DNA of 64,000 nt, from contig NC_135662.1 of the NCBI RefSeq assembly GCF_964188315.1, forward strand, positions 57,226,001-57,290,000. Reading direction: 5' to 3'. The notes under the pieces are model-generated. The model searched no databases and had not been told where the DNA came from. It saw only the letters and a program-made list of their open reading frames with translations. Of this stretch, positions 37,520 to 48,526 are shown piece by piece; positions within the stretch are counted from its first letter, which is position 1; every line of letters begins with the position of its first letter. Position numbers and translations under genes: made by a program. The stretch is from Podarcis muralis. Its lineage: Eukaryota.

Positions 37520-40500
37520 ATGGGAGAAAAAGAACTGCCTGGTGTTTTGATCTGTGAAATAGGAGGTGCATTTGGTGTACTGGAGAGCCATGTAGAGTTC
37601 CTTAAGAAACACTTCAATCTCATCGCCCTGAGAGAGTTTCACAGAAACAAGGACGAACTTCGTGAAAAGATCAAGTCCATTTTTGTATTTGAGTGCAGAC
37701 CTCTCATTGACCGGGAACTTCTTGAAAGCTTGCCCAGCCTAAAGGTGGTAGCAAACTCAGGGGTAGGAGTGAATCATTTGGACTTGAAACTGATTTCGAG
37801 CTTTGGAGTAAAAGTCACCAACACCCCACATGCTGTTGCTGACTCCACAGCAGACATAGGCATGGCCTTAATGCTGGCATCTGCAAGAAGACTAGTGGAA
37901 GGTAAAGTCATTTTCTTTTGCAGTTTATGTAAGTTGTTGTGGACATATTTTAGATTTTGTGGGATGTAACTTGCACTAATATGTGCAGATTTTTAGTTCA
38001 CCACTCCCAGTATCAATCAGTCCTTGGATCAGCTGATCAATAGTTACATGATAATGCCCATGATATACTGATAAATAATAATACAGGTATTTTCTCCCTT
38101 TCCTAGCTATTCAGGTACCAAGTAGAAATTACAGTAACTTTTAAACTGAAAACTATGGAGTACTGTACTCCAAATTTTGGCTTGCTTTTAGTTTGTAACT
38201 GAAATTGAGTCAGAGCCAATATCCATTTAGCTCAACATTTTATGGGTTGAAGCTCTTCAGACTCTTGAACAGATGTTTCTCTATTCCTTCCATACAAGAT
38301 CCCTTAACTAGATTTAACAGTGATGGATTCTGCTGCCTTCTTCCTTAAATTTATTCCCACCTATATTTTTATGTGCTGCTTATTGTACAAATTCTAAGTA
38401 GAAATATGCCTTCCAGGGACTCCCAGTTAGAGCTGTCTTCTGATTTTCAATAACTATTGTAAATAGTGCAGGCATGTTTTCTAATTTCTGGAATAAAGTT
38501 GTTGTAACTACTAACACTCTTGTTTCTCATTCGCTGCTGTGTGGCTTCTGCTTTTGTTTTTTAGGTTGTCATATTGCAACATCTCCAGATACCACACATT
38601 TTGCGGTTGACTGGCTGGGAGTAGAAGTTACCCGGGCCACACTTGGTATCATTGGAATGGGTAGCATTGGGTATAAAGTAGCCAAGAGAGCAAAAGCTTT
38701 TGACATGAACATCCTTTATCACAACAGGAACCGTAGGTATATCTTTGATGAAGGTGTTGTACAGTGCAGCCCATGCAAAATTAACATGGGAGTAAGTCTC
38801 ATGGATCTCAGTGGGGCTTACTCCTGAGTAGACAGGTACAGGACCTCATCCTTAGTTATTTAACTTCCAATGTATTGGTAATCTAGGTTTCAATGTCTGT
38901 TGGAAGCAGTTGTTCGAAACTATCAATCTCTGCACCATGTTACAGTGTCAGTCTGTGTGTAGTCATGGAGGCTAAGGGGCTGAGACAAAAGCAATTCCTC
39001 CTTCACTTGAGACTATTTTCATCTCTACCATTAAAGTGAAAAAGTCACTGTATGGTAGGGTTGCCATATTTCAAGAGGTAAGAGTCTGGACACAAAAAGT
39101 TGTTGGGCTTCCTTAGGGCAATCACCCAATAGCCCCTCCTCCACTGCTGAGCCTGAGCTGGCCACACCAGAGCCCGGGTCACCAGAGACTGAACCAGAGC
39201 CACCCCACACACAAAATAACCCCCACCAAAAATCCAGGACATTTGCTTTAAAATGTAAAATCACACACCCCCGATGGGCATGTAGGACTCCCAAAAGAGG
39301 GCATGTCCGGGAATTACTGGACATATGGCAAACCTACGTGTATGGTGATTCTTCTTGCTAATATTTGAACACTGAAGTGGAAACAAGTGATTTTTAAAGA
39401 CATGATGATTTTCAGACTTACAATATGGTAAAACGACCACACACACACACACACCCTGCCTGTTCAGAATTAATATATAAATCAGGGTTTATTAGATTTT
39501 TGTCTTGAATCTCTTTTTGCAGCATGCACAGCGCGACACATACAAAATAAGGGTAATTCTGCTTCTCTCCAGTATTGGCAATCAACACCTAAAGCAGGGC
39601 ACACAAGAAGGCGCACTAGAAGACTAGAAGATCTTTTCAAAGATAGTAATCATTTTTTAAAAAACCACCGCTAGCCAGAAATACATGCAGGCTCCCATGT
39701 TCCTCAAGTTTTCAGATTCTCATGATCAGCCAGCATCCTTTAGCAATGCCCTTTGGCTGCCTTGAAAGGCACCATGCAAGGAGTAACACTGATGTTCACA
39801 TGGATGCTGCATTGAATTGGGAGGGATGCAGTGGACTTTAAATGTTGCCTTTTGACCTAAAATTTGGCTACCCATAGGAAAGAATCTACGAGGAGCTCCC
39901 AGCCCCTGTCAAGTATTTGTTCTGCCCGGGCAGCTCCAGAAATGAGAGTTACTAGTTGTCAGGGGTTCAGGAGCAGAGGCAAGGGCAAGGGAGGAAACAG
40001 AGAGCGAAGGGGAGGAGGCAGAAGAAAAGATGAGCGATGACGACGACCCGAGATCTCCGAGCCTGTCCAGTGAATCGGAGGATTCACAGAAAGGAGCACC
40101 AGTGGCCAGGGCAAGGGGGGAGTTTAGGGGGGCACCCCAGGAAGATAGAGCCAGAGGGGACTCAGAGGAGAGCAGTTGGAGATCGGGACCAGCGTCACCG
40201 CCAGAGAACAGAGAAGAGGAAGGGAGCCAGGGGGCAAGCGCTGGCAGCTCACAACAGGAGGGAGGGCACGAGTCAGGAGTGGCCACACCTCCATCTGGGA
40301 GCGAAGAGACGGTTAGACGGAAGGTGGAAGGTTGGGCGCGCGCGCCAAGTTCAAATGCACAGGAAGGCGACGCAGTAGGCAGCCCGGAAAGGGAGCCGGG
40401 TCCTAAAGCCCGGCGCAAGGAGACAGGAGGGTCCGGGGGGTCAGCGTCAGAAGAATCCCGGAAGGAAGAGACCCAGGGGGGCAGAGGGACCCAGAGAAGA

Positions 40501-43500
40501 ACAGTCAGGCGGAAAAGGTGGAGCAGGGCTAGGATATTAAGTTGGTGTACGAGGGGCGGAGATTCAGACGGAGCTTCGCCGGTCTAGCTACTAGACGTAG
40601 AGTTGCACGCAGCAGCTTGAGAATGGAAACTGTAACTCAATAAAGACTTTTACTTAATGACCGTGGGCTAGCGTGATCCTCTGTGAGCTGGGATCTGGAA
40701 GCAACCCTGACAGTAAGCTCCGTCTGACTGAATTGTGGGCATCTACAGCCTCGAGGAGAGGAGAGAAGCAGGTGCCTACTAGCGAGCTCACGAACGGCAG
40801 CCGACATGACGGCTGAACAGCAGATAGCGGAACTCAGAGAAGCAGTGTCACAGCTGAATGCCGAGGCTCTCGCATCCAGGAAGAGAGAGGAGGACGCAGC
40901 TGCCGCCTACAGGGATCTCCAGGTCAGGTTGGAAGTGCTTACGAAGCAAGGGCAACAGACACCCAAACCAGAGGGGATTGGGCTGGGGAGACGCACAGGC
41001 GGTCTGGTCTCTCACTTCGATGGGAACCTGCAACAGTATCCCAATTTTAAAGCAGACGTGCTGTGTGCACTGCAACTGCTGAGTAAAGATTTTAGAGATG
41101 AACAAGAGAAAGTGGGATTCATCATGTCTTATTTGCATGGGGATGCCAGAGCATGGCTGCGCAATTTGTGGAGGGATAACGATCCGGCGCTCCAAAATGC
41201 GAATGCCTTTATTAAAGCGATGGATGAGTGTTTTTTATCAAGCATTGACGTGGATCTTGCTAGGCAACAGATTCATGGACTGAAACAGGGAAGGGCCAGC
41301 GTACGGCAGTACCATGCCCGCTTTTTCGCCTTGGCCAGTGCCCTAGAATGGGACAGAGATGCGACTCCTGTAAGAGACCTGTTCTGGGAGGGATTAAACA
41401 GCTCTGTGAAAGATGAAATTGCGAGGGGGGAGAGACCCCGAACCACCCAGGAGGTCGTGCAGAGGGCGCTGGCAGTGGGGGTGCGGCTGGAAGGACGTCC
41501 GTGGAGCAGGGACGAAGGGCGTGGAGGGCGCGAAACAGCCAGGGGCTCCTCCTTCTTTCCCAGAGAAGCAGCGCGTACGCAATCCACGCCTCCGCCAGGA
41601 GGAGGAGCTGAACCTATGGAGGTTGGAGGTGCCAGGGCTCAGTCAGCAACCAGAGCCCTAGCACCAGCAGCAGTGAAAGCGAAGCCTCCTAGAGGGAACA
41701 GGAAGTGTTACGTCTGTGAGGAGCCAGGGCATATGGCGAAAGAGTGTCCCCAGAGGCTCAACAAGCTCACTGCAGCCTCAGCAATGGTGACTGCAGCAAC
41801 GCAGCAAGGAGGACCACAGCAGGGAAACGACGCAGTCTGGCTGGAGGAAGAGGCACTGGGGCCCAGCCAGACGTGTTAATGATGCAGTCCCCAGAGATTT
41901 TACAGCCCGTGAACCCCCTCCCGCCCAAACCAGTGGTGAGGCTCACCGCATCGCTCCAGCTGCCCAATGGCATCACCATGGACGTGCCAATCACCATTGA
42001 CTCAGGCAGCAATGCGGACTTTATAGGGCAGGACTTTGTCAACAAGCATGCTATACAGTTGCTGCCGGCCACACTGCCCCTGCAGGTTGTCACGGTGGAC
42101 GGCAGGGAGCTGCTAGGGGGGCAAGTGGTGCAGCAAACGCCACCAATGGTGATGCGACTTGGGAATCACAAAGAAGTCATAAGCTTCAACGTCACTCAAT
42201 TATCGGACACGCCCATTGTGTTGGGCATGAGTTGGCTGGACAAGCACAGCCCAACGCTGGCTTGGTACCAGAGGCAGCTGACCTTCGGCTCTTCTTTTTG
42301 TGCTGAACACTGCATCGTGCCCAGGCAGGAAGGAGAGGAAGAGGAGTCACAGCTGCTACTAGGCACGCTGCAAGCGATTCCCCACAAGTACGCAGAATTT
42401 TTGGAAGTTTTCTGCGAGAAGGAGGCAGACCGGCTACCACCTCACAGGCCATATGACTGCAAGATTGACCTGCTGCCAGGAGCGGCGCTGCCTAAGGGGA
42501 GACTGTATTCCATGTCAGAGGACGAACTGCAAGAACTCAAGGAGTTCATAGATCATAATTTGGAGCGCGGTTTCATCCGGGAGTCCAAGGCAGCGGGAGG
42601 CAGTCCGGTGTTCTTCGTTAAGAAGCGGGATACGCCCCAAAAGAGACTTGTAGTGGATTACAGGATCTTGAACAGTGTGACTAAGCCATCGGACTTCCCC
42701 ATGCCCCGAATTGACGACCTCCTCGCAAAGGTGCGGAAGGGCAGAGTGTTCACCAAGTTGGACCTGCGAGGGGCGTACAACCTCATTCGCATGCGGGAGG
42801 GAGATGAGTGGAAAACAGCCATGTTCACGCCACTGGGGACCTACGAATATAGAGTTATGCCGTTTGGATTGCAAAATGGCGCCCACGTTTTTCAAGCATT
42901 CATGCATCACGTGTTGGCGGGACTTCTCTACAAGACGTGCGTCTGTTTCTTAGATGACATCCTGATCTTTTCGGAGTCGCAACAGGAGCATGACAAACAC
43001 GTCAAGGAAGTGCTGAACAGGCTAAAGCAACATAGGCTCTACGCCAAGCTGGAGAAGTGCCAATTTGACGTGACGGAGGTGGATTTTCTGGGCTACAAGC
43101 TGTCTGACAAGGGGCTCGCCATGGACAGCGCCAAGGTTCGAGCGGTGTTGGATTGGAAGAGCCCACGCAACCGGAAGGAGGTCCAACGGTTTGTCGGCTT
43201 TGCGAACTTCTATCGCAAGTTTATCAAGGGCTTCGCTATGCAGACGGCGGCCATCACTGACACGCTTAGCTCCAAGAAAAAGAAGTTCATTTGGACAGAG
43301 CAGGCGGAACAGTCCTTTCAGGCACTCAAGCGTCTCTTCGCGTCGGAAGAGCAGCTGCTTCACGTCAACCCTAGCAAGCCGATGAGGGTGGAGACAGACG
43401 CCTCGGACAGAGCCGTGGGGGCGGTCCTGCTGCAGAAAGACCCGCAAGGGGTGTGGCGACCGGGAGCGTTTTACTCCAGGAAGCTCAGCAAGTCCGAGCA

Positions 43501-46500
43501 GAACTACACCATATGGGACAGGGAGTTGCTGGCCATTCATGCAGCGTTCAAGGCGTGGAGGCACTTTCTGATCGGCGCCAAGCACACGGTGCAGGTTTGC
43601 ACGGACCACAAGAACCTAGAGCACTGGCGCACGGCACAGTTCCTGAACCAGAGGCAGATACGTTGGGCTGAGTTCTTTGCGAACTTCGACTTCCGAATAG
43701 AGTATGTCCCGGGGGACACCAACATCATGGCGGACGCTCTCTCTCGTAAGCCACAGTATCTGGAGGACGCAACGCCAGCGGCCGCCATGCACATCTTCGC
43801 ACCAACAGTGTGGGCGTGCGCCGCGGCAACCGTGGACCTGGAGGCGGTGCGACGAGCGTTGCAGGGGGACTCCTTCGCACAAGCAAAGATGGCAGAGGTG
43901 CAAAGGGGCAAGGCAGCGGCCGACGGTTTCCAGCTAAGAGATGGATTGCTCATCCGTAAAGGGGCCATCTACGTGCCGGGAGACGAACTTCGCGCCAAGG
44001 TGCTGCAGCAGCTGCACGACGCGCCCACGGCTGGGCACTTCGGCAAGGAGAAGACGGTGGAATTAGTCGCCAGGGATTTCTGGTGGCCTGGAATGAGAGG
44101 GGAGGTCGCGGACTACGTGGCGAGGTGTGACACCTGCCAGAGGGCGAAGCCAGTGCATAGACCGCCGGCCGGACTGTTGGAACCGCTGCAAACTCCGGTC
44201 GAACCTTGGGAGAGAGTGGCCCTGGACTTTGTCACGGATCTGCCCAGCTCGAGGGGCAAGACGGCAGTGCTGGTGGTGGTGGACCTGTTTTCCAAGATGG
44301 CACATTTCATTCCGTGTGCGAAGGTGACCACGGCGGAGCAAACCGCCAAACTGTTCATAGACCACGTGTTCAAGGTTCACGGTCTGCCACGGTCTATTCT
44401 GTCCGACCGGGGGCGGCAGTTCATCTCGAATTTCTGGCAGAAGCTGATGGGCTTCCTGAACGTCAAGATCAACCTGGCGTCGGCGAGACACCCGCAGACC
44501 AACGGGCAAGCCGAGCGGGTCAATGCCATCATGCAGCAGTACTTGAGGTGTTATGCAAATCAACAGCCTGCGACGTGGGTGGATTACCTGCCGCTCGCCG
44601 AGTTCGCCTACAACAACACGAAGCACGTGTCCACGGGGATCACGCCGTTCTTCGCCAACAACGGGAGGCACCCCAGAACTTTTCCGGGACTGGAAAGGCT
44701 GGGGGAGGGGGAGCCGCAGACGGCAGATGCGTTCGCGTCGGAGCTGCAGGAAGTCCACGATCAGCTGAGGCGCCACCTGGAGCTGGCCAAGCACGCATAC
44801 AAGGTACAAGCGGACAAAAGTAGAAGGGTTGGCGAAGAGCTCCACGTGGGAGACTGGGTCTGGTTAGCAGCCCACGCAGTGCCGGCCAGGTCGTTGGCCA
44901 AGAAGAAACTAGGGCATAAGCAACTGGGGCCCTATCAAGTCGAAGAGCAGATCAACCCGGTGGCCTTCAGGCTGGCGCTTCCGGAGGGTTCCAGAATGCA
45001 TCCGGTGTTCCACAGATCGGTGCTCACTCCCTACAAGGCACCGCACAGGTTTCAGGAACCCGGAACGGCACCGAGTCCGGTCAGAGACAGAACAGGGCGC
45101 GCAGGAGGGGCACAGAAGGAGCGCATCAACGAAGTCACAGAGATTTTGGATTCCAGATGGGGGGAAGAAGGGGTAGAATACTTTCTCGCCAAGGAGGGCA
45201 CCCCGGCCAGTGCGAACAGCTGGGTGCCGGGCTACGCCTTGGACGAACCTCTGCTCAAAGACGAGTTTCATGCCCTCTTCCCACATAGACCAATGCCAGC
45301 AGACTTTTTCGACGACTGGCTTTTCACGCCCACGCTTTCGGCCAGCACGTTCCGGGGGTTCGACTCGGACGAGGACCCGACACGAGACGTCCGTTCCCCG
45401 GAGGGGTCACCCTCGGGATCTGCCTCAGAACCCTCGTATTGGTGGGACGACAGACCAGAGGAGCAGTGGCGCAGGAAGTGGCAAGAAGGTCCAGGACGAG
45501 CAACGCCGCCAGGAGGAAGTGAGGGAGAGACGGACATGGACGTTTTCGGGGACGACCCTGGTTTCGAGCACGGCGGCACAGAGATGGAAGCAGAGGTGAC
45601 CGTCGTCGACGAGAGCAGGGAGGAAGAACCGGAAGACTTCGGAAGGAGGCCCGCTACGGGAAGCGAACGGTACCCGACATTCGTCCCCTTGACACAGCAG
45701 CACCCAACTCCAGCACCGGAAGGAGGGGAAGGGGGAGTGGGGGGCTTCGAGGGGGGGATGGATGTCAGGGGTTCAGGAGCAGAGGCAAGGGCAAGGGAGG
45801 AAACAGAGAGCGAAGGGGAGGAGGCAGAAGAAAAGATGAGCGATGACGACGACCCGAGATCTCCGAGCCTTTCCAGTGAATCGGAGGATTCACAGAAAGG
45901 AGCACCAGTGGCCAGGGCAAGGGGGGAGTTTAGGGGGGCACCCCAGGAAGATAGAGCCAGAGGGGACTCAGAGGAGAGCAGTTGGAGATCGGGACCAGCG
46001 TCACCGCCAGAGAACAGAGAAGAGGAAGGGAGCCAGGGGGCAAGCGCTGGCAGCTCACAACAGGAGGGAGGGCACGAGTCAGGAGTGGCCACACCTCCAT
46101 CTGGGAGCGAAGAGACGGTTAGACGGAAGGTGGAAGGTTGGGCGCGCGCGCCAAGTTCAAATGCACAGGAAGGCGACGCAGTAGGCAGCCCGGAAAGGGA
46201 GCCGGGTCCTAAAGCCCGGCGCAAGGAGACAGGAGGGTCCGGGGGGTCAGCGTCAGAAGAATCCCGGAAGGAAGAGACCCAGGGGGGCAGAGGGACCCAG
46301 AGAAGAACAGTCAGGCGGAAAAGGTGGAGCAGGGCTAGGATATTAAGTTGGTGTACGAGGGGCGGAGATTCAGACGGAGCTTCGCCGGTCTAGCTACTAG
46401 ACGTAGAGTTGCACGCAGCAGCTTGAGAATGGAAACTGTAACTCAATAAAGACTTTTACTTAATGACCGTGGGCTAGCGTGATCCTCTGTGAGCTGGGAT

Positions 46501-48526
46501 CTGGAAGCAACCCTGACACTAGTATAAGTGACAATTGTCACATTTATTTCCTTCCAGGAAAGAGGAAGAAGAACAGGCAGTTGGTGCCACTTATTGCAGA
46601 AACATAGAAGACTTGCTCCAAGGGTCTGACTTTGTGATGCTGGTTGTGAATCTGACACCTGAGACACACAAGCTCATTGGGAAAAGAGAGCTGCAGCTGA
46701 TGAAACCCACGGCTACTCTCATCAACATCTGCAGAGGTAGGGGATGTGTGACTACCTAAATGTAAACTTCAGCTATATACATTTTTCAAATACCTATTTT
46801 TGCATATATTCCATCCTTTTCTCTGTATTCCTTTGTGTGAAAGGTGATACATTTCATCAGCACTAACAAAGGGTGAGGCCAACAACCAGTTTTCAGTGTC
46901 AAGAATCAATATGGATTATTTTGAAACCAGTAGCATTGGGAGTGGGATCAGGAGTATGGTACACAAGAAAAAGAAGGGGGAAATTCAGTGGTAAAGAAAC
47001 ATACTTTGGGTACATTCGATTTGGCACAGCTGTGGGTTTCATTACACCCTAATCCAGATGTAGAAGGAAGGAAGGATGGAAGAGCAATATCACATGAAGT
47101 GGCTTTATTGGTGAACTTTTGCTGCAAAGGAAATGGATTAAGGACTGGATTCATAAGCCTTTTTACTATTTCGGCTCAATCAAAACATGTTTGGAGAGAG
47201 AATGTGGAGATTCCCTTAGCTCCTTAAAATGTGTTCATTGACTGCAATCCTAAGCACACTTACCTAGGCATTAACTCCACTGGACACAATGTTGGCTTTT
47301 CAAGTGAACAATGCAAGAAACAAGCTTTCAGTCTTTATCATGAGCTACTTTATGACTTTCTGTCTGTATCAGGTGCAGTAGTTGATCAAGATGCCTTGGT
47401 AGAAGCGCTCAAAAATGGAGTTATTAAGGCTGCAGCTTTAGATGTGACTCACCCTGAACCATTGCCAAGGTAAAATATTACCAAAAAAAAACAAAACCCT
47501 TTATTGTTGTTGTTTTAGTTCTGACATGGAATAAGTATTATTCATTGGTCCAAAACTTCAACATTAAGGCATAGATGATCATGGTTTGTCTCTGTTGCCT
47601 CCTTTTTAATGCTTGATGTGTTCAGAAACCTGTGTGCATGGATAGTCATAAATATGCCTTCTTCCGAAGTCATTTTGTCATTTCTTCTGACTGACCTGAG
47701 TCTCAGAGTATTTGGATTTAAACAAACTGAAGTAACACAAGAAATCATGGTGGTAGATGTATTATATATAACCCATTCCAAGCTCTGTAGTGCAACAACA
47801 CAATAGCACTTGCGTTCAGGGCTGAGATAGCAATCTGTCCCTTGTCCCGAGGTCTCAAATGCTTTTCCTTTGCCATCTAACACTTTGAAACAAAACAACC
47901 TTCAGATTGTATAGTAGACGGCAAAATTTGTTTTGCTGCTTTAATTCATTTTCACTCAAACCTATACCGTGCATTTGAAATGCAAAAATAGAGTGGAATT
48001 GTAAGGGGGAGTTCTTGTTCTAAGCCTAGAACATAGACTGCATTGTTCTAAGCTTTCTATCTAACAATCTAACAGTACTGCCATACAAACAAGTTTATAG
48101 GTGATGAGAACTTTGATTCAGAGCACCAGTCACTCAAAAGCAGATCTTCATAGGGCTAACTCCTAAAATGATTTAGTAGATCATATCACACTTAATGATT
48201 GTGACCTACACAGTGTATAGAAGACATCTCAGTGGAAGCTAACTTACCACTAAACCCCGCCCCCCCCCCCAATTTGGAGTCTTTTTCAGTGCAGTCATAT
48301 AGCAATATAGTTACTTTGATCTGCCTGTGCCAGATGACTTCTGATTTTTCTTTTATGGCTTCCTTGCAGGGACCACCCATTATTGCAACTGAAGAATGTT
48401 ATTATAACTCCTCACATTGGAACTGCAACTGTGCAAGCCCTGCTTATGATGACAGAAGAAGCAGTGGAAAATATACAGGCTGTTCTCAATGACCTCCCCA
48501 TTCCTAGTGAAGTGATCCCCCAATAG
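37520..48526 (+). CDS. D-isomer-specific 2-hydroxyacid dehydrogenase (GRHPR/2-ketogluconate reductase-like), copy A, 328 aa
   Basis: Coding exons 37520-37901, 38565-38736, 46558-46736, 47373-47469, 48370-48526 (382/172/179/97/157 nt), all GT-AG and in frame. Rossmann [17 protein letters not shown], catalytic Arg (INICRG), Glu (PEPLP), His (TPHIGTAT); AATAAA at 48691. Confidence 0.93.
39056..39336. mobile_element. hAT-Blackjack-like MITE
   Basis: TIRs TAGGGTTGCCATAT / ATATGGCAAACCTA; imperfect TSD ctgtatgg/cgtgtatgg. Family assignment from recalled TIR type. Confidence 0.7.
39957..40712 (+). repeat. 5' LTR
   Basis: TG...CA termini; TATTAA at 40535-40540; AATAAA at 40639-40644; near-identical to 45763-46518. 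Confidence 0.97.
40806..41879 (+). CDS. gag: Retrotransposon Gag (coiled coil, capsid, CCHC nucleocapsid), 357 aa
   Basis: Open ORF; capsid-like FDGNLQQY...FIMSYLHGDARAW and LKQGRASVRQYHARF; zinc knuckle CYVCEEPGHMAKEC at 41706-41747. Confidence 0.93.
   Translation: MTAEQQIAELREAVSQLNAEALASRKREEDAAAAYRDLQVRLEVLTKQGQQTPKPEGIGLGRRTGGLVSHFDGNLQQYPNFKADVLCALQLLSKDFRDEQEKVGFIMSYLHGDARAWLRNLWRDNDPALQNANAFIKAMDECFLSSIDVDLARQQIHGLKQGRASVRQYHARFFALASALEWDRDATPVRDLFWEGLNSSVKDEIARGERPRTTQEVVQRALAVGVRLEGRPWSRDEGRGGRETARGSSFFPREAARTQSTPPPGGGAEPMEVGGARAQSATRALAPAAVKAKPPRGNRKCYVCEEPGHMAKECPQRLNKLTAASAMVTAATQQGGPQQGNDAVWLEEEALGPSQTC
41822..46393 (+). CDS. pol: Retrotransposon Pol (protease, RT, RNase H, integrase, chromodomain, long C-terminal extension), -1 frame relative to gag
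   Basis: Uninterrupted ORF: IDSGSN protease (41999), LPPHR...FFVKK...FLDD RT, TDASD/ELLAI/TDHKNL/ADALSR RNase H, HHCC + DDE integrase, GPY/F motif, chromodomain ~45125-45292; stop at 46391-46393 inside the 3' LTR. Confidence 0.95.
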   Translation, partial: GKRRSLAGGRGTGAQPDVLMMQSPEILQPVNPLPPKPVVRLTASLQLPNGITMDVPITIDSGSNADFIGQDFVNKHAIQLLPATLPLQVVTVDGRELLGGQVVQQTPPMVMRLGNHKEVISFNVTQLSDTPIVLGMSWLDKHSPTLAWYQRQLTFGSSFCAEHCIVPRQEGEEEESQLLLGTLQAIPHKYAEFLEVFCEKEADRLPPHRPYDCKIDLLPGAALPKGRLYSMSEDELQELKEFIDHNLERGFIRESKAAGGSPVFFVKKRDTPQKRLVVDYRILNSVTKPSDFPMPRIDDLLAKVRKGRVFTKLDLRGAYNLIRMREGDEWKTAMFTPLGTYEYRVMPFGLQNGAHVFQAFMHHVLAGLLYKTCVCFLDDILIFSESQQEHDKHVKEVLNRLKQHRLYAKLEKCQFDVTEVDFLGYKLSDKGLAMDSAKVRAVLDWKSPRNRKEVQRFVGFANFYRKFIKGFAMQTAAITDTLSSKKKKFIWTEQAEQSFQALKRLFASEEQLLHVNPSKPMRVETDASDRAVGAVLLQKDPQGVWRPGAFYSRKLSKSEQNYTIWDRELLAIHAAFKAWRHFLIGAKHTVQVCTDHKNLEHWRTAQFLNQRQIRWAEFFANFDFRIEYVPGDTNIMADALSRKPQYLEDATPAAAMHIFAPTVWACAAATVDLEAVRRALQGDSFAQAKMAEVQRGKAAADGFQLRDGLLIRKGAIYVPGDELRAKVLQQLHDAPTAGHFGKEKTVELVARDFWWPGMRGEVADYVARCDTCQRAKPVHRPPAGLLEPLQTPVEPWERVALDFVTDLPSSRGKTAVLVVVDLFSKMAHFIPCAKVTTAEQTAKLFIDHVFKVHGLPRSILSDRGRQFISNFWQKLMGFLNVKINLASARHPQTNGQAERVNAIMQQYLRCYANQQPATWVDYLPLAEFAYNNTKHVSTGITPFFANNGRHPRTFPGLERLGEGEPQTADAFASELQEVHDQLRRHLELAKHAYKVQADKSRRVGEELHVGDWVWLAAHAVPARSLAKKKLGHKQLGPYQVEEQINPVAFRLALPEGSRMHPVFHRSVLTPYKAPHRFQEPGTAPSPVRDRTGRAGGAQKERINEVTEILDSRWGEEGVEYFLAKEGTPASANSWVPGYALDEPLLKDEFHALFPHRPMPADFFDDWLFTPTLSASTFRGFDSDEDPTRDVRSPEGSPSGSASEPSYWWDDRPEEQWRRKWQEGPGRATPPGGSEGETDMDVFGDDPGFEHGGTEMEAEVTVVDESREEEPEDFGRRPATGSERYPTFVPLTQQHPTPAPEGGEGGVGGFEGGMDVRGSGAEARAREETESEGEEAEEKMSDDDDPRSPSLSSESEDSQKGAPVARARGEFRGAPQEDRARGDSEESSWRSGPASPPENREEEGSQGASAGSSQQEGGHESGVATPPSGSEETVRRKVEGWARAPSSNAQEGDAVGSPEREPGPKARRKETGGSGGSASEESRKEETQGGRGTQRRTVRRKRWSRARILSWCTRGGDSDGASPV
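45763..46518 (+). repeat. 3' LTR
   Basis: Copy of the 5' LTR, preceded by PPT GAGGGGGGGATGGA and followed by TSD CTAGT. Confidence 0.97.

Follow-up and report, generated by a model that had tools for sequence, protein, structure and literature searches.

Genes overlapping the U3 region of the long terminal repeat (LTR) are familiar from retroviruses, where nef of the human and simian immunodeficiency viruses (HIV and SIV), sag of mouse mammary tumour virus (MMTV) and bel/bet of the foamy viruses have start codons of their own and are expressed from spliced or internal-promoter mRNAs. Described integrase tails include those of murine leukaemia virus (MLV), whose integrase (IN) is associated with BET proteins, of Ty5, associated with Sir4, and of Ty1, associated with AC40 and equipped with a nuclear localisation signal. 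The closest parallel to the case considered here comes from plants: in CRM elements of group A and in some Bingo/Beetle elements of Beta vulgaris, the gag-pol open reading frame (ORF) enters the 3' LTR (PMC3059260, PMC3605345), and in CRM this LTR-encoded portion contains the CR motif of the integrase C-terminus, a putative targeting domain, while priming is by tRNA-Met (PMC3059260). We analysed a window of 64,000 nucleotides (nt) from the lizard Podarcis muralis (contig NC_135662.1, positions 57,226,001 to 57,290,000 of the forward strand), which holds a single full LTR retrotransposon at 39957-46518 of the window. Behind the integrase and a degenerate chromodomain, the pol frame of this element continues through the polypurine tract (PPT) and U3 into R, adding 366 residues. 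We consider it probable that these residues are a genuine, selected C-terminal extension of Gag-Pol. A preliminary description of the locus, made from the DNA letters alone, had already drawn the comparison with the plant CRM elements, and drew it correctly (PMC3059260, PMC3605345).

The element has the hallmarks of Ty3/gypsy retrotransposons (Metaviridae), namely TG...CA LTRs, a 5-bp target-site duplication, a CCHC gag and the order protease (PR), reverse transcriptase (RT), RNase H (RH), IN. Its pol (1549 aa) lies in the -1 frame relative to gag, with Pfam matches in the order RVP_2, RVT_1, RT_RNaseH, Integrase_H2C2, rve and SH3_Tf2-1. This last match points to the Tf1/sushi group, as does a primer-binding site (PBS) that pairs with the 5' end of the element's own transcript and not with a tRNA, and we place the element as Tf1/sushi-like. 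Tf1 of Schizosaccharomyces pombe and sushi-ichi of fish have the same Gag and PR-RT-RH-IN-chromodomain order, a Tf2-type SH3 domain and self-priming, the last of these reportedly described by Lin and Levin in 1997 and by Butler in 2001. PMC6317226 presents priming from the first transcript bases as a known mechanism of this group.

Like the CRM and Beta elements, the lizard element is of the Ty3/gypsy type, has an ORF that runs past the PPT into the 3' LTR, and has an atypical chromodomain where a methyl-lysine reader would be expected, this domain being atypical or absent in the plant elements. Unlike CRM, which belongs to a plant clade, uses a tRNA primer and has the CR motif in place of a chromodomain, it self-primes and retains a chromodomain remnant upstream of the PPT; it has no CR motif and does not fall into the CRM clade. 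The 209 codons within its LTR moreover take in the complete U3 with the TATA box as well as the self-primer, and the tail sequence is unrelated to that of CRM. Apparently, the LTR-encoded tail of the lizard element arose independently. On our analysis, integrase tails encoded in the LTR would not be confined to the centromeric elements of plants but would also occur in a vertebrate Tf1/sushi-like family, for which we found no literature report of such a tail, although this is weak evidence, since the search did not cover key older papers on vertebrate chromoviruses.

In the window copy, the pol frame has no stop in the 366 codons that follow the chromodomain (45293-46390), and over the same region the two alternative sense frames are interrupted by 5 and 8 stops. 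The frame crosses the purine tracts, enters the LTR at 45763 and spans the whole of U3 and the TATA-like box before it ends at a TAG 21 nt into R. The preliminary description had given an open pol frame of about 366 residues through PPT and U3, 209 of them LTR-encoded, a stop about 20 nt past the predicted transcription start, an acidic tail with a basic end, and an AUG at 40030/45836 opening a 185-aa ORF. The ORF listing and translation bear out all of these coordinates: codons 45764-46390 number 209, both AUGs and the ORF in the 5' LTR are present, and the tail has 79 acidic (D+E) and 46 basic (K+R) residues with an isoelectric point (pI) of 4.5, rising to 11.5 in the last 60 residues. The DNA of the tail is poor in T (13% before the LTR, 10% in U3), and an exact first-order Markov model of the same dinucleotide content predicts 6.1 stops and a probability of 2e-3 for none. 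For one copy this figure is unusual and suggestive only, not decisive alone; it is the comparative data that settle the matter.

The DNA sample, drawn from Podarcis genomes and read assemblies, comprised some ten LTR copies and three complete tails: the full P. lilfordi element L001, 81% identical to the window element; the contig L004, which holds a complete tail; LTRs from L002, L003 and L005; and four LTR copies from L006. Counted from the second LTR base, the pol frame is open for 209 codons in the window copy, 211 in L002 (93% identical), 209 in L003 (77%), 207 in L005 (71%), and 217 and 242 in two L006 copies (66%), so that 6 of 10 LTR copies, 66-93% identical in DNA, keep it open over 207-242 codons. 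It is open throughout in L004 and for 194 codons in the 5' LTR of L001, and broken in three copies (the 3' LTR of L001, L006_a and L006_c). No copy is free of stops in the remaining two sense frames, where they number 2-11, and every frame other than that of pol is stopped in at least some copies. Intact copies differ by indels that are multiples of three, and the frame of other subfamilies terminates, to within a few codons, at the corresponding position immediately behind the self-primer. Conservation is also seen among annotated Podarcis proteins, 30 of which include the beginning of the tail; 14 of these extend to the same C-terminus, with identities of 51-99%. P0018 and P0026 are 99% identical to the window tail. 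Among reads of copies with at least 95% similarity, no indel in the tail reaches a share of 10%, and the four variants listed for the LTR ORF all fall at codon position 3. The two LTRs of the window element, 756 bp each, differ by one base (40065 G vs 45871 T), and the difference is silent in the frame of the tail.

The substitutions point to selection on the encoded protein. Calculated on Logan and P. lilfordi loci, P0001 and P0003 being left out, the pairwise Nei-Gojobori (NG86) ratio of nonsynonymous to synonymous divergence (dN/dS) of the LTR-encoded part is 0.21-0.33 between subfamilies, and the same alignment gives 1.0-1.7 and 0.6-0.9 in the two shifted frames. The window element and L001 were aligned as nucleotides only, which avoids the bias of a protein-guided alignment; between these two, dN/dS is 0.19 for gag, 0.07 for PR-RT-RNase H, 0.06 for integrase, 0.05 for the chromo-like domain, 0.42 for the pre-LTR tail and 0.24 for the LTR-encoded tail. 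Differences in the LTR tail of this pair are distributed 25/33/66 over the three codon positions (chi-square p=1e-5), and those between the window copy and L003, which has no indel in the 209 ORF codons, 35/32/74 (p=8e-6). A maximum-likelihood codon model (GY+F3X4) fitted to six copies yields an omega of 0.275 in the pol frame, as against 2.58 and 1.25 in the shifted sense frames and 1.80, 0.39 and 1.69 in the antisense frames; fixing omega at 1 costs 67.9 log-likelihood units (2dlnL=135.8). Judged from these comparisons of sequence, the tail is under purifying selection at the protein level, and in the pol tail frame only. The preliminary description had suggested examining whether the frame stays open with dN/dS below 1 across U3 while other frames accumulate stops; the outcome is positive, for the reading in which the tail is fused to Pol.

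Constraint is unevenly distributed along the tail and is not exclusively of one kind. Measured against L004, the most divergent full tail, the ratio of nonsynonymous to synonymous differences per site (pN/pS) separates a constrained segment A from a variable segment B before the LTR (see the table) and is 0.25 in the first 46 LTR codons, 0.57-0.61 in the middle of the LTR part and 0.36 in the last 46 codons. At the protein level, no part is better conserved than the proximal portion of the pre-LTR tail. In the SLSSESEDSQKGAP block of the six copies, codon positions 1 and 2 are invariant in 80% and 73% of codons and position 3 never is; since the residues are fixed and every wobble base varies, this block argues for protein-level selection, and one serine of SASEES alternates between TCC and AGT codons. 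Conservation extends to all three codon positions in the RKVEGWARAPSSN region, around the TATA box and over the first 15 codons of the LTR, whose end integrase must bind, and in these places cis-element and coding constraint cannot be separated. The low synonymous divergence of the PPT codons likewise indicates a constraint on the nucleic acid.

The border between U3 and R lies within the coding part of the tail. The PBS at 40715-40727 is perfectly complementary to 13 nt at 46370-46382, which correspond to 40564-40576 in the 5' LTR, and the two partners have changed in a compensatory manner, at the same LTR position, in L001, L003 and L005. The complementarity measures 11-13 nt, lies about 30 nt downstream of the TATA-like box and covaries in four subfamilies. 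On the strength of the TATA box and the covarying self-primer, we place the start of R at about 46370 and U3 at 45763-46369; the RNA reads show no clear pile-ups of transcript starts or ends in two runs with a depth of 2-10. As far as sequence can tell, the covariation supports Tf1-type self-priming in the lizard element. The last seven pol codons are the self-primer itself, and the C-terminal residues of the tail vary together with the self-primer and the PBS.

Taken together, these features suggest the following model. U3 lies at the 3' end of the genomic RNA, and a ribosome that has frameshifted into pol would continue through a spacer that was once 3' untranslated sequence, the PPT, U3 and 21 nt of R; we infer in this way that the tail is translated. 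The nucleotides that encode it would have other tasks as well, namely those of plus-strand primer, LTR end bound by integrase, promoter with its TATA box, and self-primer. One stretch of 630 nt would accordingly unite an integrase-binding LTR end, a TATA promoter, the transcript start and a self-primer with 209 codons under purifying selection.

Could the LTR-encoded part instead be a separate accessory protein? Such a protein, of 185 aa, would start at the AUG at 45836 (40030 in the 5' LTR) of a spliced or LTR-initiated mRNA, as in HIV nef or MMTV sag. The AUG does open this ORF in both LTRs of the window copy and is shared with L002, L003 and P0001, the closest subfamilies; U3-encoded accessory genes are established for retroviruses, and nef, sag and bel/bet resemble the lizard frame in that coding overlaps the PPT and U3 and that promoter and protein share nucleotides. 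Yet the AUG is replaced in six relatives (P0002, P0003, P0010, L001, L005 and L006), and coding conservation with its wobble periodicity reaches upstream of it, starting at the second LTR base and running across the LTR edge in frame with the pre-LTR tail. The U3 of the 5' LTR, moreover, precedes the inferred transcript start and lies outside the element's own transcript, and no splice joint was seen in the two RNA-seq runs, whose depth is only 2-10 reads. The retroviral proteins are the products of separate genes; the lizard frame is a continuation of pol, with neither a conserved start of its own nor a separate mRNA in evidence, and we regard the accessory protein as very improbable. The preliminary description had left the choice between a module fused to integrase and a separately expressed protein, and of these the former is supported by the open frame and the dN/dS below 1, and the latter is not supported, given the replaced AUG. 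The parsimonious reading of the sequences would be that the tail is the C-terminus of Gag-Pol and not a nef/sag-like gene.

A second possibility is that selection favours read-through as such: a 3' untranslated region shortened from about 1.1 kb to about 100 nt would spare the genomic RNA nonsense-mediated decay, and the amino acids would be largely irrelevant. The stop lies at nearly the same place in all subfamilies, just after the self-primer, and segment B and the mid-LTR segments (pN/pS 0.57-0.81) tolerate in-frame indels, as this explanation would have it. Selection for read-through alone, however, would purge stops without lowering dN/dS, and the overall omega is 0.275; the motif blocks keep all their residues while all wobble bases change, and the TCC/AGT switch preserves a serine. 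We therefore think this explanation unlikely, if less so than the accessory protein. Much lower still is the probability we assign to an open frame without selection, due only to the low T content (10-13%) of a copy too young to have decayed. The low T content of U3 (10%), an antisense frame that is also open in the window copy and the single-copy probability of about 2e-3 speak for it, but lineages down to 66% identity keep the frame while frames of the same composition hold 2-11 stops, and neutrality is opposed by the omega of 0.275 and the 2dlnL of 135.8; the comparative and selection data contradict it. Equally far-fetched in our view is a real gene on the minus strand (45268-46224, 318 aa) of which the sense signal would be the mirror image. 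This antisense ORF shares the wobble positions of pol and reaches an omega of 0.39, which is nevertheless above that of the sense frame; it is interrupted by stops in 4 of 6 copies, the sense frame by none, and its ends are not conserved, while the sense frame carries on from pol up to a conserved stop. We interpret the antisense ORF as a by-product of the sense frame.

Several observations weigh against the tail as a selected extension of Gag-Pol. The sample of LTR copies and full tails is small, and the RNA reads are sparse and come from both strands. Conservation near the LTR start, at the TATA box and at the primer is partly a matter of DNA. Segment B and the mid-LTR segments are near-neutral (pN/pS 0.6-0.8), and much of the length may be only spacer. 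Three non-identical P. muralis proteins (P0004, P0046 and P0052) have in common a frameshift in a G-run before the LTR and end 9-11 residues later; they represent either a sub-lineage that lacks the LTR-encoded tail or a recurrent homopolymer slip, and a sub-lineage of the P0004 type may have multiplied with no LTR-encoded part of its own or through mobilisation in trans. Together with the near-neutral linkers, these frameshifted copies count against the LTR part being strictly essential. Finally, the tail had no match in Pfam (E up to 10), in a PDB sequence search or in the ESM Atlas, and so offers no functional handle.

What, then, might the tail do, and where did it come from? It is rich in Ser, Gly and Pro, and its conserved short motifs (DFFDDWLF...SYWWDD...WRRKW, SLSSESEDSQKGAP, RKVxGWARAPSSN, SASEESRK and RKRWSxAxxLxWC) are separated by fast-evolving linkers. 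An AlphaFold2 prediction for the chromodomain and tail gave a confidence (pLDDT) of 40.7 and one short helix, at PEEQWRRKW, which is consistent with a disordered tail, the alignment of 10 rows being shallow. Searches with the tail protein returned only Podarcis proteins and a few read-assembly ORFs, with 5 matches among 5.8e9 clustered proteins; among 1.84e9 (1.84 billion) representative proteins there were likewise 5 matches, all of them members of the element's own family, and no homologue outside it.

As nearest outgroups the analysis found the polyproteins P0013 (41% identity) and P0014 (35%). The comparison of stop positions used their protein ends, the contig L007 being without an LTR. 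Both have canonical chromodomains (60 and 47 bits) and, unlike the lizard element, stop 29 and 6 residues after them. The chromo-like domain of the window element aligns with these chromodomains, but its Pfam Chromo match is below threshold (E=0.002, 18.4 bits vs a gathering cutoff of 25.1) and all three cage aromatics are substituted. The stop after the chromodomain may have been lost, and formerly non-coding spacer, PPT and U3 may then have been recruited as coding sequence by overprinting. Such an origin would fit both the ends of the outgroup proteins and the lack of tail homologues; the capture of a host sequence that is now unrecognisable is a possible alternative. With overprinting, the tail would be a young, lineage-restricted coding sequence, probably derived from non-coding LTR DNA.

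Because the chromodomain has lost its methyl-lysine cage, we suggest, by analogy, that the tail is a targeting, tethering or import module that replaces it. Among functions this seems to us the most likely, although we would put it at somewhat less than an even chance. Candidate motifs are the acidic-aromatic patches, which resemble activation domains, the phospho-acidic SSESEDSQ block and the arginine-rich basic C-terminus encoded over the TATA box. In the integrase tails of MLV, Ty5 and Ty1, short linear motifs in a disordered C-terminus provide the tether to chromatin factors, and the likeness that we propose is one of function and not of sequence; those tails are short and are encoded upstream of the PPT. 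A fuller scenario, in which the tail was born de novo by overprinting, its motifs took over integration-site tethering or nuclear entry from the cage-less chromodomain, and promoter, primers and targeting module have since co-evolved in the same nucleotides, is more speculative and in our estimate rather doubtful. The tail is nonetheless a candidate for the means by which a vertebrate chromovirus whose chromodomain is dead picks its integration sites or enters the nucleus. For genome annotation, the analysis carries a warning that conserved ORFs in lizard solo LTRs would be tails of pol, not host or accessory genes.

Features of the retrotransposon, in window coordinates
Feature	Position	Strand	Remark
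5' target-site duplication CTAGT	39952..39956	+	identical 5 bases at 46519-46523
5' LTR, 756 bp, TG...CA; same open frame, 185-aa ORF from AUG 40030	39957..40712	+	
PBS	40715..40727	+	two bases beyond the 5' LTR; covaries with the beginning of R in four subfamilies
gag: Retrotrans_gag, Ty3 capsid, CCHC knuckle	40806..41879	+	Pfam
pol ORF: PR, RT, RNase H, integrase (zinc finger, core, SH3), chromo-like domain, 366-aa tail	41744..46393	+	
Degenerate chromodomain	45131..45271	+	aromatic-cage Y/W/Y of the outgroups is N/K/T here
Tail segment A: acidic-aromatic motifs DFFDDWLF, SYWWDD, PEEQWRRKW; constrained	45293..45499	+	pN/pS 0.27 vs L004
Tail segment B: variable acidic linker	45500..45700	+	pN/pS 0.81 vs L004; 18-codon indel between subfamilies
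Polypurine tracts, translation GEGG.GGFEGGMD	45718..45762	+	low synonymous divergence
3' LTR	45763..46518	+	
LTR-encoded part of the tail, 209 codons: all of U3 and 7 codons of R	45764..46390	+	omega 0.275
In-frame AUG of the 185-aa stand-alone reading	45836..45838	+	not conserved across subfamilies
TATA-like box ATATTAA, translated within the RILSW stretch	46340..46346	+	all three codon positions conserved
R start (predicted) / self-primer TCAGACGGAGCTT, translated within DSDGA	46370..46382	+	
pol stop TAG, 21 nt into R	46391..46393	+	site kept within a few codons in other subfamilies
Polyadenylation signal AATAAA	46445..46450	+	
3' target-site duplication CTAGT	46519..46523	+	

RNA-seq reads, from both strands, cover 45763-46360, within U3, 3-5 times as deeply as the internal part of the element. 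Many of them continue past the LTR edge at 45763 into flanks that differ from one read to another, so that a large number of LTR copies apparently lie inside other transcripts.

Two loci on Podarcis lilfordi chromosomes deserve mention. At L001:4419-10982, the LTRs are 99.7% identical, yet pol is broken by several 1-2 nt indels, which suggests a young insertion of a defective copy, through mobilisation in trans or very recent damage. At L006:9778-16237, four LTRs of the family, 66-80% identical to the window LTR and one of them inverted, lie within 6.5 kb and may mark an insertion hot spot or a nested cluster.

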